Shown here in pieces: positions 9,698-42,821 of a DNA stretch of 64,000 bases (the stretch's first letter is position 1; every line of letters begins with the position of its first letter). Both the position numbers and the translations under genes were made by a program. The notes below the pieces were generated by a model. The model did no database searches. It saw only the letters and a program-made list of their open reading frames with translations, and was not told the DNA's origin. Origin of the DNA: Anthoceros angustus (taxonomy: Eukaryota > Plantae > Anthocerotophyta); assembly GCA_010909165.1 (NCBI GenBank), contig VJWM01000221.1:124001-188000 (forward strand), in the 5' to 3' direction.

Positions 9698-9966
9698 AGC
9701 AGCCACAGCTGCGAGAATGTTCTAGTGTATTTGCTTTAGAAGCATCGAGCTACAGAGCAGGTTGCGTATGTACAGGCGGACAAGGCTAGCTGACGTTCAG
9801 TAGTTTTAGTCACCTTCCGTTCCAACCTAACGGCGGCCGTTATGTCGTCCTCGACCCCGGCATGTGCGCACCCTGCGGTTGCATGGCAGGGCATCGCGAG
9901 GATCGCATCAGAACAAACCACCTGCCCTGCTGGTGGAAGGAGCACCGCCCAGACACCTCGGACAAG

Positions 9967-12900
9967 ATGGCCGGCCGGATCATTCCTGGTTTGATGTTTC
10001 TCGCGTTGGCAGTGCGCCATGCGATTTGTAATGAAATCATGAGGCAGTATTTGCTCACCAGCAGTGTGGTCGGCGATTGTGCGACCGCTTCGAACGCACT
10101 GGATGGCCTGAGTTGCACTGAGTTCCTTTGGGCGACGTTTGCGGTTCCTTCCAAGAATGTGAGAGGGATTGCTTCCTGATCCTGGGTTTCTGAAGAGGAT
10201 GCTTTTGAGCGCAGTGGAATTCTTGTCTTTTGTGCAGACCCAACAAGGAACCTCGTATGCGATAACGTTGGACGAAACGTTTGTGCTCAGCACTGGGCAG
10301 ACAGAGAAATTGAAGTACCCCATCACCATCTCCTTTACGCTTGGGCCAACTGCCTTCACTCTGCCTGCAACTTTCGTGGCTGTGAGTAGCTCTGCTATGA
10401 CGGATGGACGGATGGATAAGGCATGGCATGGCATCCCATCCTCCTCACTCCAGTTGGAACGTGAACTAGGAACATAATGCACAGCCCTACGAAGAGTCCA
10501 TCGAACGATCTCCTTGCGTTGCTTACACTGGTTCCGGCACGTTGGCCACTTGTGGATGGTAATGCTGGCTGGTGCCTCAGGCTGGGCCATATTTCATGCA
10601 AACTCACGCCTTGCTGCAGGTGGCCCTAATCTGAAGATCTGCTTGCAGGGCTACGGATGCTGCCGGAAATAACATACCCAACAGTGAGGTCAGCACACAA
10701 GAACCGTTTGCGAATCACACCTGATTGTGGCGCCTTGCAAAATTTACCTCAGCCTGATGCTCTGCCTGTGCTGTAACAATGCAGGGTTTCTGCTGCTCCA
10801 ACTGTGCTACAAGCTCAACCAGCCGGGGCTCGCAATGCACTGACTCAGGTGACTATGACATGTGCACTGCTTCTTAGATATTGAGCTGCTTAACCATGAG
10901 CAAGTTTCTAAGGTCGATGACACTTGCTTAGTCATGTACAAATGAACAGACTCTTCTCCAGTAGCATATTGTCTAAGGATGAGCGCAAACTGGTGAGTGA
11001 GTGCTATTGCTTGGCTTGGAATCTGTCCATCCAGGTTTCGTTTGCCCTCATATTGGGCTTTTGGGTTACATTCAGGTTTCAAACTTACTCTCTGGGCGGC
11101 TACTCGGCGTCCTTGGAGTTTGCCACCGTCGGTGTCAGACGTTACATCAGTGGGACCAAGGTGCTGTGGATGCCACTTCTGCTACATTACAAGGAGCATA
11201 GTTGAGGCTGCTCGTGCTTCATTCTCTGTAATCTGCGTATGCTTGCCGGTTGTGCAGCCCAGCTCCGAGAATTTAACAATTTCAGGAGATACTCCTACAG
11301 CCGTCGACAGTGAGGGCCAGTGGAAGATTTTGCTTACTAAAATCACTTCCCCCACCTTGGATGCCCTCCATTCATCGTATCTGTCCATTCCCCTGTCCCC
11401 GGTGAGATTTACATTGTTCCTTGCCGCTGTTCCTTGCCTTGCTGCAATGGCAGTACAAGAAATGCTGTGATATGGACGTCTGACGCGCTGTTGTCGAAAA
11501 TCAGCCTCCTTCTATGGTGCAAGATATTTCTGGGTGGCTGGCCTTGGACTCTTCGTTGTACGGAAGCAACGACTCCTGCAACTTGGTGGGTTCGTCGTAC
11601 GATGGGTATGTCGCCCATCCGAATAAGTGCTCAGCACCTCTGGGTGACTGCACAAACAACCAACTAAACAGCTATGTCCAGGTAACTGTTTGATGCTGTG
11701 GGCTCGTCCGACCTTGGCAGTTCCAAAACGCTAACTGCAGTCTCCGTCCTTCCAAATGTCTTGAGCAGAAAAACGCTGCTGCACAACGTCATGGTTCTCC
11801 GGGACCATACTCGGCAACCACAACCTATGGATCCTTCCACGTAAGTTTCAGAAGACGTCGTGACTGTTGACAGCAAAGAAGGGCCTGTTCTGAAGGTCAT
11901 CTGATCACCTGTCAGGCGAATATGACGGATGACCGTAGCACACTTTACTCCATCACGGTGCCGCAAAGTGCTCTAGTGCTCTCCTATACCACCTTTGCCG
12001 TAGCCATTGTTGCTGACAATATTGAATATATCCCAACAGTGTAGACACCCTCCCTTGGCTTTCCTTCCTTCTATTTGAACCACCTTGATTGGATGGCTGA
12101 CTCTTCTACGTTCTTGTCACATGATCAGGTACAAAGGATCGATCGTGGATCTCAAAGCTCTCGGATACAATTCCAGTGACATTTCCACCAGAATTGTGAC
12201 CGTGGACGTCAAGAGCACAGGAACAACTGCTACCAATTACACTCTCACCGTAAGTAGCCCACGGGAAGGCAAGGACGTTGGTGGTGTTCAGGGCCCAAGT
12301 GCTTTTGGCAGTGGCTGATTCACTGTTGTGTGCATATTTTCATAGGCCAGCTCCAGTGCACAAGTGGAATGGCTTCTTCTCAGGTGATTCAACCTCACCT
12401 TCACCGTCACCGTCACCATCACCTCACCCCTCGTCACCTTCCACGACACGGAAGTATTGCAGAGACGTGATGCCATAAATGCTCATTCTTGTCACCCGGT
12501 TGTGAGCCCTCATCTCAGTCTGTCACCCTAATGAATCTGCTGCCGAACAACCCGAAAGGTGTCAACTTCACACTCCATTTCGACACCAACGTGGCCCCGG
12601 CCTTCAACTGCTCAGGTGTGCATCCTGTTCTTGTCGAATGCCTAGCTCCGTCATAGAACACAGATCCTCATGGTTTTACTGTGTATCCAGCATATCTGTT
12701 TGACATCCAAAGCCACCTGCAAGACTGGCAGACTGTGACGGCGTATCCGGATGGAGTGACTAAGTCGGTAAGCTCTCGAGCCACCCAGGCAAGGGTCCCT
12801 TCCCTGCACACACATCCACATGAGTACTAACCCTGGCTTGCTGAGCAGATCAGTGAGAAATTCCCCCCGCTACAGATCTCCTCCCTCCCGAGATGGATGC

Positions 12901-13941
12901 AGTATCCTGTCCAGTTCCTGGCCATCCAGCTCAAAAACTGCAGGCATGAGCTCACATTCCCCCGCCCTGTGCTGGCATTTGCAATTTTTCAATTTCATTT
13001 TCACTCCTCGTGTATCCGGTTTTCTGACCGGATGGCAGGAACTGCACTTCAGCGGAGGTTGCGCGAACTCCACCGCCGTCAACTGCCAGACTTTCCACAC
13101 ATGTTGGTCGGCCGTGATGACCATGGTGGGAGCACTGGCGTTGGCGATCGTCAGTAAGTTCATCGTTCGCAACCAGGATCCAGGCCTCCAGAACGTGTAG
13201 TCGTGAATCTGATTGCGTTCCGTTCCCGCAGCAATTCTGACGCTGGTGGCGCTGATTCGGCACGGGAGGCTAGGGTTCTTCGTGTCACAGTGCGCGCTGT
13301 TGATGTGCTTGCCCTGCTGGCTGGGGTTCAAGCACAGTGGCAAGCTCGCGGATCTCCTCCGGCTCAAAGCTCTACGGGGTCGCGTCGCTCCAGCAGCTCC
13401 AGCTGCCAAGGTCTGGAAGCCATTGCTGGGCCCTGGCAGGGAGGCGGCAGCGGAGGACGACGAGGAAGACGGCATGAGGTCGGACGACGAGCAGGATCAC
13501 AGGGCCGGGCCGGGCGATGAAGGGGACCAGGAAGAAGCGCCCGGGACCGGGCTGGGACACCGGGCCTCGCTGCTGGCGCCGCCCCCGCCGGGAACTCCCT
13601 TGCCGGGGAAGGGGAAAAAGCCCTTCATCCCGCCGCGACCAGTGGTCCCCGACCAGCCTCCCCTGCTTAAATCTCCCACCCCCTTGCCGAAGAAGGCATT
13701 AGACACGCCCCGACCAGTGGTCTCCGACCGCCCTCCTACGGGGACTCCCTGGCTGAAGAGATTGAAGAAGGCCTTCAAGCGGCCCCCACCAGTAGTCCCC
13801 GACCTCCCCCACCCGGTCGCCGGCAGGGCTCTGGGTCCGGTGGGCCCGGGCACCTTGCCTATGCCTGCTGGCCGGGGACCAAGAATGGTGCGCTTCGAGG
13901 CGCCTTTCAATGGACGCAACCTCTCTCTGGGCAACTCCTGA
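9967..13941 (+). CDS. HAP2: HAP2/GCS1-family class II fusion protein (fusexin), divergent, 18 exons, about 800 aa
   Basis: Hand-spliced exons, all phase-consistent: 9967-10158, 10238-10381, 10470-10558, 10649-10688, 10785-10848, 10950(or 10962)-10992, 11076-11160, 11258-11401, 11505-11681, 11769-11840, 11916-12040, 12129-12249, 12351-12383, 12519-12615, 12691-12767, 12849-12943, 13053-13153, 13232-13941. Product has a signal peptide; LLTSSVVGDC..LSC..FAVPS; NAQPYEE; TCGW..SEGFCCSNC..RG..C..AYCLR..W; YLSIP; W...SCNLVG.SY...PNKC..P.GDC..NQL; ADNIEY; an Ig-like domain III; C..GC..NC..TCW; and a TM segment followed by LIRHG. The exon 16 donor is GC and less certain. Confidence 0.88.
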
Positions 13942-14666
13942 AGGGCGCCCAGCAGGCCATCGCCCTTGAGACTGCTTCAGCGAGTATTTGGCGAACCCAG
14001 AATTGAGATTTCAAGACACCCATGAGCGGAAATTACAAACAAAAGCGCAACCGAAGAGAAATATTTATCACTTGGCTAAGCTGCCACGAGTCTCAGCATT
14101 GTAATATCAAGGATTGTCTACGTGCAATTTGGACTCCTCACAACCTCAATTACACCATGCACAACCTGCAGTAGGTTTCCGTTGGAGGCTACACGTCGTG
14201 CAACTAGGACAGTAGAGAAAGGAACAGAACGGTAGACTAAGGGAGTAGGAAACTTCAAGTAGCTGCTGTAAAGCAGGTGACACTCATTTACACCTGTGCG
14301 CCTTGGCCACCTGCATCCACAGAGCTTGCAGTACAGGCACCGGTGTTAGAGGAAGCGCAGCTGGGTCTCTGTTATTCTCAGCAAATAAAACACACTTTAG
14401 ACGAGGGCAAACAAAAAAAGGAGCTATATTCCCCGCTGCTTCAATTGTACAGACAAAAACTGGCCTCCTCAACATACTTATATAATGAATGGGAAATAAG
14501 GTCAAATCGGAAAACCATTGTATTATCCACATCATACGGTAGCTCGGTCCATAGACCACTCCACAAATCAGCTCTCCATAGGCGCTCCAGCCAAAAGAGC
14601 CATTTCTGGAAGTAGGTATTGCGATGGTACGAGTATCAAAGTAGGCGAATTCACAGACGAGGTGAA

Positions 14667-37768: not shown

Positions 37769-39045
37769 TGTGCTCTTCAAATCTGATCGATTCAAAGATT
37801 TCGTGATCCTCCTGCAATAACAGAATTAGAAGAAAAATTACAGCTGCATAGAAAGCTTGAGTACCTTGGTTAGTTCGAGTTAAAAAAGACCAACACGCAA
37901 TGTTTATATAGAGATCTTCCTTTTAACTTCTATTTCAAATTATACAATGAATAATAAAGAGAAAAGAGAATTTTCTATGTGGAGTATTCTTGAAAAAGGT
38001 AATATATGTACTTATACTTACGATATATTTTAAACTTAGAAGTTATATATTTTAGTATTATATTAATAATTTTAAATATATTCAGATGGTAATACGGAAC
38101 ATCTTAATAATACTTTGTTGCTGGAAAGAAGATTGTAAAAATGTTGAATTGATTACAAGGTAGTATTTAAATCGTGTGACATCTGAATAAATAAAAGCAT
38201 ATCAATAGTCCAATGCAGTGGGGCAAAACGGAACGTGTGCCGGTCGTGCAAGGAGTGGGGAGTAGCGCGGCCCACGGGGAGTCCGCTGGACATTAGTCAT
38301 TGGCGTTGTTGTGTTGCCCCGGCTCCCGGGCGTGACCCACGGACGGGAAGTGGAGTCATACTGCCGGCGTGTAATAGTCGGTTGCCGGCGCTCCCGGTTA
38401 AACATTGGCGCAAGAAATGGGGCCACAAGCGTACGCTACACGTCGCACAGACATTGCAGTCCAGTCCATTCCCCGGTTCCGGTGACAGCCAGCCCATCGC
38501 AGGCCAGGGCCCGGGCCAGCCCCGTCCAGTCGTGAGCCTGTCGCCCCACGCGCTGCAGCCCGGCCCGGGAGGGGCGCTGCCGCTGCCGCTGGCGTTGGCG
38601 CTGGCGCTGGTTGGCGTCTTCCGCCTCCTGCGGCTCCAGCCGAATGATGCACCGGAGCCGCATGGCTTGCAGGACCGAGTGAAGTGACGCACTGCTGCCG
38701 CCTCGGTGCTGCCTGGCTTGCGCGCCGCCGGCTCCGCGGGTGCAGGGGTCGTGAAATCTGCTCACTTCTGCTCGGCTGTGCTCTGCGTAGATCTGCGTGC
38801 GGCGTTGGTGCGATCCGGGATCGGGATTGGGATCGTGATCGGGGCCGGGATCGGGACGCGGGATGGGAGGAAGGGGGAATGTCTGAGCGGCAGAGGGGAG
38901 CTGGATCGAGCGAGGCGCGAGCTTTTGCTTGTGCTTGTGCTTGTTTCGGTCGGAAGGCGGCAGCTGCGGCGGCCGGACCGGCAGGCGCTTCTGGTAGGGC
39001 TACTCTGCGGAGCGGCTTGATGGTACATTGGTGAGGACTGGGAGG

Positions 39046-41796
39046 ATGGAGAGGTGTTGCAAGATGAGGTCGGCATTGCATCGGGCGATCGTGTTGTTCG
39101 TCTTGGTTGCGAGTTTGTCGTGCCTTGGGAGCGGGCGGAAGTACGGTCCGAGTGATGTCGCGGTGGTAGGGCGGGGAGGAGGTGTGGAGGTGGAGGGGTT
39201 TAGAGGTGTTGGAAATGCGGATCGGCTGCTTTTGCGGTCGGGGGAGCGGGTGAGAGGGAGATTCTTGCTGGAGGATCAGAATTCTGGTGAGCGGAAGGAG
39301 GAGGAGAGGAAGGACGGGGAGCGCAGGATGTGACGGCGGAGGAGAATCAGGACTGGTCGGCGGAGAAGGAGGGGAGAAGGCGGGGAGAAGAAGGAGGAGG
39401 GGAGGGGAAGTGATGGAGGGGAGGATAAGGACGGGGGGAGGGGAGATCAGTCGTCTGGTGCGGGAGAGTGGAAGGACGGTGAGGAGCAGAAGAATGTGGA
39501 GGCTGCGGCGAGCGGCGGTGGCCTATCGGGAGGCGTGAAGGAGGAGTGGAAAGAGGAGCGTAAGGAGGAGGAGCAGAAGCAGCACAAGTCGGAGGATAGT
39601 AAGGATGATTGGAAGGCCGAGAGTGAGAAGAAGGAGGAAGAGAAACGCGAATGGACGGAGGAGAAGAAAGAGCAGGAGAGAGGGGAGGAGGTGAAGGAGG
39701 AGAAAAGTGAGCAGGAACCGCAGGAGCGGAAGGAGAGCGGAGGGGACAAGGGAGACGGACAGGAAGGGAGAAAGGAGCAGAAGAAAGAGGACAGTGCAGA
39801 GGTGGTGGAGGAGGTCAAGAAGGAGGAGTCCTCCAAGGAGCATTGGCAGGAGGAACAGAAGAAAGAGGAGAAAGCTGAGGGATGGAGTGACGAGCAGGGA
39901 CAGAAAGGCGGGAGAGAGGAGGGGCCTGAGTTCGCAGAGGAGAAGAAGGAAGTGCGGAAGGAGGAGGAGCAGCCGAAGGGAGCGGCAGAGGAGAAAAAGG
40001 AAGAGTGGAAGGAGGAGGATAAGCCGAAGGCAGCTGTGGAGGAGAAGAAGGAAGAGTCGAAGGAGGAGGAGGAGGAGGAGGAGCAGCCGAAGGAAGCGGC
40101 GGAGGAGAAAAAGGAAGAGTGGAAGGAGGAGAAGAAGGAAGAGAGGAAGGAGGAGAAGAAGGAAGAGTGGAAGGAGGAGAAGAAGGAAGAGTCGAAGGAG
40201 GAGAAGAAGGAAGAGTCGAAGGAGGAGAAGAAGGAAGAGTCGAAGGAGGAGAAGAAGGAAGAGGAGCAGCCGAAGGAAGCGGCGGAGGAGAAGAAGGAAG
40301 TGTGGAAGGAGGAGGAGCAGCCGAAGGATGTGGCTCAAGAGAACATGGGCGCGCGGAGAGAGGAGCAAGAATTGAACGAGGGCACAGAGAAGAAAGAAGC
40401 ATGGAAGACGGAAGAGGACGAGGAGAAGGAAGAAGAACCAGCAAAACAAGAGTGGAAGAAGGAGCCCAAGGAGGAGCAGTCGCAAGGTGACGAAGCCGAC
40501 GAAACGAGGGTGGAACTTAAGAGTGATCCGGCAGAAGAGCGCAGGGAGGAGCGGGTTGAGGAGAATCAGGAGTGGAACGACGCAAACGATGAGGGAATCA
40601 AAACAGAGAACAGAGGAGACAGGGCTGACGAGTCCAAGGAGGAGCAAGAGACTAAGGATACCAATCGCAAGGAGTTCACAGAGGAGAAAAAAGTGGTTGT
40701 GGAAAAGGTTGAAAAGTGGGAGGAGAATCCGATTAAGGAGATAGGCGGTGAGAAAGAGCAAGAGTGGACATCAGATGGAAGGGTTGAGAAAGGCAACAAC
40801 GAGCAGACTGAACAGGGTGATGGTTCTGAGAAAGGCGAGGGTAGACAAGCTGAAGGAGATGATGAGCAGGAAGAAGAGAAACAGGGGGAGGGTGAGGCGG
40901 AAGATCAGAAAGAAGAGTCAGAGCACGGGCAGCACGAGTCCCACGCAGAGGAAGAGGTCAGATTGCCGGGCGAGAGGCAGGACGGTGACGATGTGGACCT
41001 TGGAAAGCTGGTCACTGACCCACAAGATGCCGGGGCTGAAGATGAGAATGCTGCCGAAGTTGCGGGGGCTGACTTTGACCTCTCTGACAACCTGAAGGAG
41101 TTTGGTCAGCAACTTGAGAAGACAGCAGGTTCGATTACCAACATTATCAACCCTGGCTTACAAAAGGGGGCTGAAATAGGAAAGCGGCTCATTGAGAGGG
41201 GCCACACACAGGTTACTGAGAGTTTCTCGCCCCTTATTGGACGAGAGTATGCTCCCCTGGTTGCCTCACTTATTTCTTATGGCATTCTGTTGGTACCTTT
41301 GGGGCTCGTGGTGTTCATTTTTGAGCGGATCAGGGCAGTTCTCTCTTTGCGCAAAGTTATCCTCTTCATCAACATATATTTGGCTGCTTATTTCGCCTCT
41401 CTTGTTCTTGCATCCTTGGCACTCAAGAATGAGCCGATGGAGCTGCTGTCTAAATACTCTCCATCCAGCTACCTCTTTTTGCAGATTCTGCAAGCATTGG
41501 GCTATGCCCTTTACTTTGTTCTGCAGAACATCTTCCTCATATCTACCTGTTCAACTGAGGAGTTCTGCCACAGATTCTCAGCTCTCCTACAATGGGTGGT
41601 TGCAGGTACGGTTGGTCTGCACTATTATATCATGGTGTTTCACAGAGCCATGGTGAAGAAGCCTCCACGCATCTCTTGGGAAGTTTATGGCATCTATAGT
41701 GTCGCGTTTGCTGTATTGTGCCTACTGGCAAAGCTTAAAAGGGGTAAGAAGGAGTATGTGCCCATTGGAGATGATACCACGGACAAGAAGAACTGA
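39046..41796 (+). CDS. Single-exon protein: signal peptide, long Glu/Lys-rich low-complexity region and C-terminal multi-pass TM domain; apparent assembly frameshifts at about 39325-39385
   Basis: ORFs 39028..39333 (signal-peptide-like ALHRAIVLFVLVASLSCLG) and 39496..41796 are in the same frame. The C-terminus has about 6 hydrophobic segments (YAPLVASLISYGILLVPL...VGLHYYIMVFHR...KKPPRISW). Confidence 0.75.
40100..40265 (+). repeat. 24-bp coding repeat (EEKKEE[W/R/S]K) about x6
   Basis: gaggagaagaaggaagag(tgg/agg/tcg)aag units. Confidence 0.85.
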
Positions 41797-42821
41797 GAGG
41801 GTATTTTCTCTCGCCTACTATTTGAAGGAGGCTTTCCAACATCCGTCATTTATTCAGAGACAACCAGCATAGTCGGGATATGCCCGACTTCGGACTCTAA
41901 TGCTGGGAAACTTATACACCATAATTTTTGCATGTCCGGTTCGACTTGCCAGCATCCGTGTAGTCACGCAATAGGTGTTAGGTGTGTAGATCATCCTGCT
42001 GTACTAATGTGCAGAGTAGACTCAAAGAGCCGACAAATTCTGCTCTAGGAGGTGTGCTGATTACCGAGGAATTTACTTCTGACAATTATTTGTTGCCGGT
42101 TCCACCGCCCTCAAAACTGCCAGCCTGATTCTGGTTGGCGCAACGTTCACACATGCGCGAATTGATGAGCGTGCGGCGGAGTCACTCTTGTAACTCTAAT
42201 CAATATTTTGATTCTTTGGGTTGTTCGTGGAGCAGTATTCCCGTTGATGCATTCTCCTCTGTCTCCTTTGTCGCGGTTAACAAATAAAGATCTAGCTCAT
42301 TTGTCATACCAGTCCTGAACAAAAGCATCCAGTACATCGTACATTGGCGTGCATTAGGCCCCCCTTAGCCAAGGTTTACCCTCATTGCAATACAAACACC
42401 ACAACTATTCCACGCCGGATTGGAGTTCTCCAGGCAACTTGCTGCGGTGCGCTGCAATACCTGTTGAACAGATAAAAAGATGCAGAAAGCAAAAGCATTT
42501 GAACTACCAGCAACTGCAAGACAGCTTCAAGTTCAAGACGACGAGAGAAGCTTGGCCGGGTGCGCTAGGGGGCAACTTTTGACTCACCAACACAGACCTT
42601 CACGCCTCATCTCAAGGTCGTCCACCGCAATCTGTAACAGGAGTTCGCATAAGCCAGAAAGCTGTTCCGCGCCGCACACAGTCGCCTTGCCTTCATGTAT
42701 GCAGGTGATGGATTCGTACAGTAGTGACAGAAGCACGGGCAGCAGCAGCTGCATAACCTGGCAGAGGCCAGAACCAAATCATCTCCTACCTTGCGACGTC
42801 CTTGTACAACCGTCCGATTTT

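Follow-up and report, generated by a model that had tools for sequence, protein, structure and literature searches.

A streptophyte HAP2/GCS1 gene whose predicted domain II tip is short, polar and acidic

It is still a matter of debate whether HAP2 drives fusion from one membrane or requires partners on both. In all HAP2 proteins studied to date, binding of the target membrane, trimerisation and gamete fusion depend on bulky nonpolar residues at the tip, and nonpolar tip residues are required for liposome binding, trimerisation and fusion in the proteins of Arabidopsis, Chlamydomonas, Tetrahymena and Cyanidioschyzon (PMC6089408, PMC9279424, PMC8777248, PMC11187246). Nine invariant anchors and three variable insertion hot spots were defined by Fedry et al. 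2018 (PMC6089408); the membrane-contact hot spot of the bc connection, known as variable region 1 or FL3, lies before bc Cys1 and is occupied by V129 in T. cruzi and by W147 and L148 in Cyanidioschyzon (PMC6089408, PMC9279424). The nonpolar tip residues that have been tested or defined by structure, whose published numbers we reproduced by counting along the solved chains, are V129, L167, L168, I183 and F184 in T. cruzi (PMC6089408), I171, F172, M175 and I176 in Arabidopsis (PMC6089408), and L194, L195, L197, L210, L211, F213, W147 and L148 in Cyanidioschyzon (PMC9279424). The one fusexin known to have an acidic, non-hydrophobic cd loop is EFF-1, for which a bilateral trans interaction has been proposed (PMC8784728, PMC11187246).

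The gene described here lies in a 64-kb stretch of DNA (the window, whose coordinates are used throughout) and is a single HAP2/GCS1 gene on the + strand at 9967-13941, with 18 exons and a product of 800 aa (the window protein). Chaining GT-AG introns gave a gene from the ATG at 9967 to the stop at 13941, RNA contigs then corrected the exon borders, and the 800-codon reading frame is uninterrupted across all 18 exons. Four RNA runs were aligned to 9900-13990: X1, which matches the window at 100% identity, is from the organism of the window itself, and the others come from two close relatives that are 95-99% alike (X2 being from relative B). GT..AG joints seen in X1 are 10688|10785, 10848|10950, 11160|11258, 11401|11505 and 11681|11769 and, in the 3' part, 12615|12691, 12767|12849 and 13153|13232; several of these are repeated in the close relatives, with the same joints recurring in four runs from three organisms. 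Elsewhere in the window, positions 38001-42000 show a strong GC skew (+0.31 to +0.39) together with an AT skew over 4 kb, unlike the remainder.

Exons 1 (9967-10158) and 2 (10238-10381) precede the tip. Exon 3 (10470-10558) encodes the strand-b Glu (PYE), variable region 1 (ESIERSP) and the segment bc Cys1-VAYTGSGTLAT-Cys2; its acceptor at 10470, which is seen in X2 and replaces a candidate at 10485 that is not seen in the RNA, adds the residues EHNAQ and so fills a 5-aa gap relative to the homologues. Exon 4 (10649-10688; ATDAAGNNIPNSE) leads into strand c and is joined to exon 5 by the GT..AG joint 10688|10785 of X1 at a depth of 5.1. Exon 5 (10785-10848) holds GFCCSNC, variable region 2 (ATSSTS), the conserved Arg (SRG), a Cys and TDS, and exon 6 (10950-10992; DSSPVAYCLRMSANW) completes variable region 3 and starts strand d. 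Exon 7 (11076-11160; FQTYSLGGYSASLEF...) continues from strand d onward and was placed by homology to the family pattern W-Y-x-x-Y-x-I-G; the joint 10992|11076 that connects it to exon 6 occurs in no RNA run and rests on this homology only.

The remaining exons are 8 (11258-11401), 9 (11505-11681), 10 to 12 (11769-11840, 11916-12040 and 12129-12249), 13 to 15 (12357-12383, 12519-12615 and 12691-12767) and 16 to 18 (12849-12943, 13053-13153 and 13232-13941). Intron 13 includes, at 12384-12445, a short repeat of the CACCGTCACC type, which reads as a Ser/Pro-rich run in another frame. Exons 16 and 17 are separated by a GC-AG intron (12944-13052), as seen in the X2 joint 12940->13050 (with 3 ambiguous letters) and in the contigs of X2, X3 and X9, all of which stop at 12943. 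Given this RNA evidence, the GC-AG intron was preferred to a model with a GT donor at 12969; a GT-only model of the border would insert 13 wrong residues. Hydropathy gives the protein a type I topology, consisting of a hydrophobic N-terminus (signal peptide), an ectodomain, a single TM helix and a cytosolic tail. The helix (aa 549-573, spanning intron 17; top Kyte-Doolittle 19-residue window 2.76 at residue 555) and the juxtamembrane Cys cluster CALLMCLPC are encoded at 13105-13317, and the cluster is followed by a basic tail rich in Pro, Lys and Arg.

The window carries a genuine, spliced class II fusexin gene of the HAP2/GCS1 family, from a streptophyte. The core of the Pfam HAP2-GCS1 domain, with the ij loop, lies in exon 9, which by itself matches PF10699 with E=1.1e-10 and 41.2 bits (gathering cut-off 27.4) and retrieves the solved HAP2 chains 7S0K, 5OW3 and 5OW4 from the PDB. 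A family HMM of 18 diverse HAP2 sequences, from which the window protein was left out, scores the whole protein at 253.5 bits over residues 18-634. These two matches bear out the assignment to HAP2 that an earlier reading had made from the sequence alone (hereafter, the sequence-only reading). The best blastp match is the HAP2 of Spirogloea (26% identity over 586 aa, E=4e-31), and from homology to 5OW3, 5MF1, 5OW4 and 7S0K we infer a class II three-domain fold. All nine of the invariant tip anchors (seven Cys, the strand-b Glu and the cd Arg) are present and aligned, the Arg of exon 5 falling opposite Cr R185, At R163 and Tc R176; of 29 positions that are nearly invariant in the family, nine differ.

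Protein collections hold little that resembles this gene. Among 1.84 billion representative proteins scanned with exon 9 there were no close relatives: the best real match in the scan was the HAP2 of Closterium (46 bits), and its six matches included two spurious repeat proteins (P0001, P0002) and the short fragments P0004-P0006, two of which come from metagenome contigs (0.7-1.8 kb) that are too short to include the loop. A similar protein was likewise absent from a collection of 15 billion proteins. Within the window, exon 9 is the sole exon of the 18 that tblastn can detect, which, taken with the lack of a close relative in the protein scan, suggests that the gene is unannotated. Exon 5 by itself (21 aa) gave no match in the PDB, an atlas search returned unrelated YHYH clusters only, and a profile search for homologues, whose candidate list was filled by low-complexity words, yielded 12 proteins. 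Among the best 120 of 463 matches to the HAP2 of Datura, all those with names were from angiosperms, and no bryophyte, fern or lycophyte HAP2 was among them. The literature that we searched contained nothing on a hornwort HAP2, nor on a HAP2 without nonpolar loops.

The sequence of the tip depends on how exons 5 and 6 are joined. The sequence-only reading had placed exon 5 at 10785-10848 and the end of exon 6 at 10992, with GT-AG borders, all of which agree with the present model, and had set the intron between them at 10849-10961 with the residues DSSP as an optional part of the loop. The start of that intron holds, but not its end: the joint in X1 (10845->10947, cut +3, that is, 10848|10950) gives a GT-AG intron 5 of 101 nt at 10849-10949, without an exon inside, and X2 has the equivalent joint. 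DSSP thus belongs to the loop. The RNA check across exons 5 and 6 that had been proposed therefore returns a direct joint at acceptor 10950 and no extra hydrophobic exon; and since exon 4 is also joined directly to exon 5, the mRNA reads GFCCSNCATSSTSRGSQCTDSDSSPVAYC.

If the polar loop were a product of faulty gene modelling, the fusion loop would have to come from a hydrophobic mini-exon or from a different splice form. Nothing of the kind was found, the sole alternative being a tandem acceptor at 10961/10962, which gives a shorter variant: 10950 is the only acceptor seen in X1, and use of the second AG at 10961 would remove DSSP. The RNA contradicts an artefact, in that X1 joins exon 4 to 5 and exon 5 to 6 directly, X2 also joins exon 5 to 6 directly, and the depth over the joint equals that of exon 5. 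We regard this explanation as barely credible, in line with the earlier judgement that a hidden mini-exon is absent.

The spliced cd loop is GFCCSNC-ATSSTS-R-GSQ-C-TDSDSSPV-AYC. As had been claimed, the cysteines and the Arg are kept, although their spacing is altered, CCxC having become CCxxC (GFCCSNC) through one inserted residue. The loop also ends, as had been noticed, in AYC in place of the usual AHC, but this position reads ASC in T. cruzi, Klebsormidium and others. The Arabidopsis and Chlamydomonas loops that had been cited for comparison agree with retrieved sequences (angiosperm CGNFFDKM.KGK.NTAHC; Chlamydomonas VWDDTF...CDFWSDPLDILIG). In the predicted protein all three of the known membrane-insertion hot spots are short, rich in Ser, Thr and Asp, and net acidic (region 1, ESIERSP; region 2, ATSSTS; region 3, TDSDSSPV).

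We compared this tip with those of 137 other HAP2 sequences (20 non-angiosperm and 117 angiosperm). The cd connection, which the RNA shows to be as polar as had been proposed, contains no F, W, L, I or M, against 2-12 in the other sequences; and its best 5-residue window scores +0.62 kcal/mol on the Wimley-White interfacial scale, on which the others range from -0.87 to -3.6, making the window protein alone in having a positive (membrane-unfavourable) best value. Both comparisons place the polarity of the loop beyond chance. When the bc hot spot is added, there is one F/W/L/I/M residue, where the 87 distinct tips have at least 2 and a median of 5; the three regions together carry a net charge of -2, a value below that of 98% of other tips. 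Every nonpolar tip residue of the Arabidopsis, T. cruzi and Cyanidioschyzon proteins falls on a position that is polar or absent in the window protein. At the level of sequence, the nonpolar tip of a functional fusogen is lacking.

A possible explanation for such a tip is that the protein is still a unilateral fusogen of the canonical kind, inserting by a minimal surface that consists of its few remaining nonpolar or aromatic residues (I121, V129-A-Y131, L137, V181 and Y183). Three copies of these per trimer would then suffice to hold it in the egg membrane, perhaps with contacts to lipid head groups or cations. V181, Y183 and I121, or V-A-Y and the L of the bc connection, may come together at the apex as a small patch of nonpolar character. 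Shallow, short loops suffice for the HAP2 of T. cruzi (PMC6089408); the V-A-Y just after bc Cys1, which takes the place of a nearly invariant x-D-G, could be a compensating change; and the scaffold and selective constraint are retained. Set against this, liposome binding, trimerisation or fertility is lost when two or three bulky residues are removed from the characterised HAP2 proteins (PMC6089408, PMC9279424), the hot spots here are without such residues, and the best interfacial window is unfavourable. Moreover, no solved HAP2 has a defined fusion loop in the segment that follows bc Cys1. The suggestion that the bc loop PCVAYTGSGTLATC might insert as a substitute is weakened, because the known bc hot spot precedes bc Cys1 and is here the polar ESIERSP; as a candidate fusion loop, the segment after Cys1 is neither supported nor excluded by these observations. 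We consider a minimal insertion surface rather unlikely.

Of the solved proteins, that of T. cruzi (5OW4) resembles the window protein in having a short-loop tip, the same Glu-Arg salt bridge and the same cysteines. Its region 3 is of the same length (C-DIFRGAALAS-C, against C-TDSDSSPVAY-C here), but the equivalents of its apex residues V129, L167, L168, I183 and F184 (PMC6089408) are S/P, absent, D and S, and its region 2 has 13 residues and an extra disulfide, whereas that of the window protein has 6 residues without the disulfide. The HAP2 of Arabidopsis and other angiosperms (5OW3) shares with the window protein a very short region 2 and a basic cytosolic tail; it differs in its amphipathic helix alphaF (GNFFDKMxKGK), needed for liposome binding and fertility, in place of which the window protein has TDSDSSPV. 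The window protein also keeps the algal GFCC motif, which is TCC or ICC in angiosperms. Chlamydomonas (5MF1, 6E18, 6DBS) and Cyanidioschyzon (7S0K) have in common with it the domain II scaffold, the PF10699 core and the pattern GFCC.C...R...C...AHC, yet each carries 8-11 bulky cd residues, of which the window protein has none, and Cyanidioschyzon additionally has FL3 (W147, L148), which is missing here (PMC9279424). The best sequence matches and nearest tree neighbours are the HAP2 proteins of zygnematophytes (Closterium, Spirogloea), although identity to these is 26% only and their loops are long and rich in W, F and L (CSLWRQKLFFGGVP), as opposed to the polar loop of the window protein.

The likeness to EFF-1 and AFF-1 of C. 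elegans is functional only: these are cell fusogens of the class II fold that have an acidic, non-hydrophobic cd loop and a proposed bilateral action (PMC8784728, PMC11187246, PMC8777248). They form a separate family without detectable sequence relationship, and act in somatic rather than gametic fusion. Nor does the window protein itself belong to the FF fusexins, every one of its sequence matches being a HAP2.

Evidence of expression and of constraint bears on whether the gene is decaying, with transcripts that are mostly unproductive and retain introns and a polar loop that arose from relaxed constraint. A fully spliced mRNA appears in none of the RNA runs, and X1 contigs retain introns over 10947-11160, 11766-12615 and 12848-13153 (introns 6, 10-13 and 16), implying that the sample contains pre-mRNA or DNA besides spliced RNA. 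The introns flanking these retained blocks are spliced at about half the depth. Retention of intron 6 brings a stop codon directly after exon 6, at the end of the cd loop (...SANW). Decay would also fit with the lack of a similar protein in the 15-billion-protein collection and with a 12-nt indel that changes the length of the loop between close relatives. However, the reading frame is intact over 800 codons and 18 exons, the loop indel is in frame, splice joints are identical in four runs from three organisms, and synonymous changes exceed non-synonymous ones. Exonic differences from the relatives are synonymous in 6 of 10 cases, the other 4 being A>D, Y>F, I>L and T>R, for a rough dN/dS of 0.22 (binomial p=0.019, on ten changes only). 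The gene looks selectively constrained, within the reach of these ten changes, and we consider its decay very improbable.

At the 5' end of the gene, an X1 contig of 4480 nt with a depth of 45, ten times that of the rest of the HAP2 gene, extends from upstream sequence across the start codon of HAP2 and stops precisely at 10158, the donor of exon 1. The transcript of a highly expressed upstream gene thus seems to overlap HAP2 exon 1 (9900-10158).

Parts of the tip-coding DNA were found by a run search in four related organisms. In relative B, for which coverage of the tip extends to region 3 only, the X2 contig across the junction shows 10 letters more than the window, the insertion amounts to 12 bases, and the loop (CTDSDSSTDSSPVAYC) carries a 4-aa in-frame insertion, DSST, which is again polar. 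The window has two acceptors 12 nt apart at 10938-10962 (AG at 10948-10949 and 10960-10961), and a further 12-nt unit (ACTCTTCTACAG-like) occurs in this region in the close relative. Together, the tandem acceptors and the relative's additional unit indicate that the loop grows by DSS(T/P) units.

A maximum-likelihood tree gives the window protein a terminal branch of 3.83 (family median, 0.93) and places it weakly beside the Zygnematophyceae (SH-aLRT 80). Monophyly with angiosperm HAP2, or with all streptophyte HAP2, is not rejected: in AU tests, whose power is limited by long branches, grouping with angiosperm HAP2 had a p-AU of 0.55 and grouping with all streptophyte HAP2 one of 0.54. Because the constrained trees are not rejected, the data are compatible with vertical descent as a land-plant orthologue, and the sequences are consistent with a window protein that is its lineage's own HAP2, inherited vertically along a very long branch, and not an additional paralogue.

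The length of this branch, the alteration of 9/29 near-invariant positions and the presence of spliced reads in many RNA runs would all fit a protein that is a non-fusogenic derivative, one that has lost insertion and is kept for adhesion or recognition, or for regulating a second, canonical HAP2 elsewhere. No such second HAP2 was found, either by tblastn in the 64-kb window or in the literature; and the structural cysteines, salt bridge, TM helix and tail, which are unnecessary for simple adhesion, have all been kept. We therefore view a non-fusogenic role as unlikely.

The reading that we prefer, to which we assign a probability of about 0.5, is that this polar-tip HAP2 engages the egg membrane through protein, by a trans interaction with itself or with a partner, and not by lipid insertion of the Arabidopsis type. 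The protein keeps the tip scaffold with its disulfides and salt bridge, its TM anchor and a basic tail rich in Cys, and the tip would be unable to insert into the target bilayer as do the proteins of Arabidopsis, Chlamydomonas, T. cruzi and Cyanidioschyzon. With a tip unable to insert, engagement of the egg would most likely be mediated by protein, in the form of a trans interaction of HAP2 with itself or with a partner on the other gamete, and the conserved fold-back of the trimer would still supply the force. If the cells are still fused at all, our comparisons would favour an engagement of the membrane that is EFF-1-like or dependent on a partner. The stronger proposal, that this is the lineage's only HAP2 and that it fuses gametes without a hydrophobic fusion loop, through an EFF-1-like trans interaction or a partner on the egg side, we advance tentatively, at well under even odds.

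These results also show that homology-based annotation can miss a HAP2 entirely, in that only 1/18 exons was visible to tblastn and no matching protein was present in large public collections. Methods for transformation exist for the hornwort Anthoceros agrestis (PMC8717380, PMC10952725), and a knockout would be feasible if the plant is that species or a close relative of it. An expressed, apparently constrained HAP2 with an acidic tip rich in Ser and Thr offers a natural experiment on the question of one membrane versus two, and it comes from a plant that we take to have swimming sperm. If it is true that this is the sole HAP2 and that its action is protein-mediated, nature would here supply an example of a gamete fusogen changing from lipid insertion to protein-mediated engagement of the membrane.
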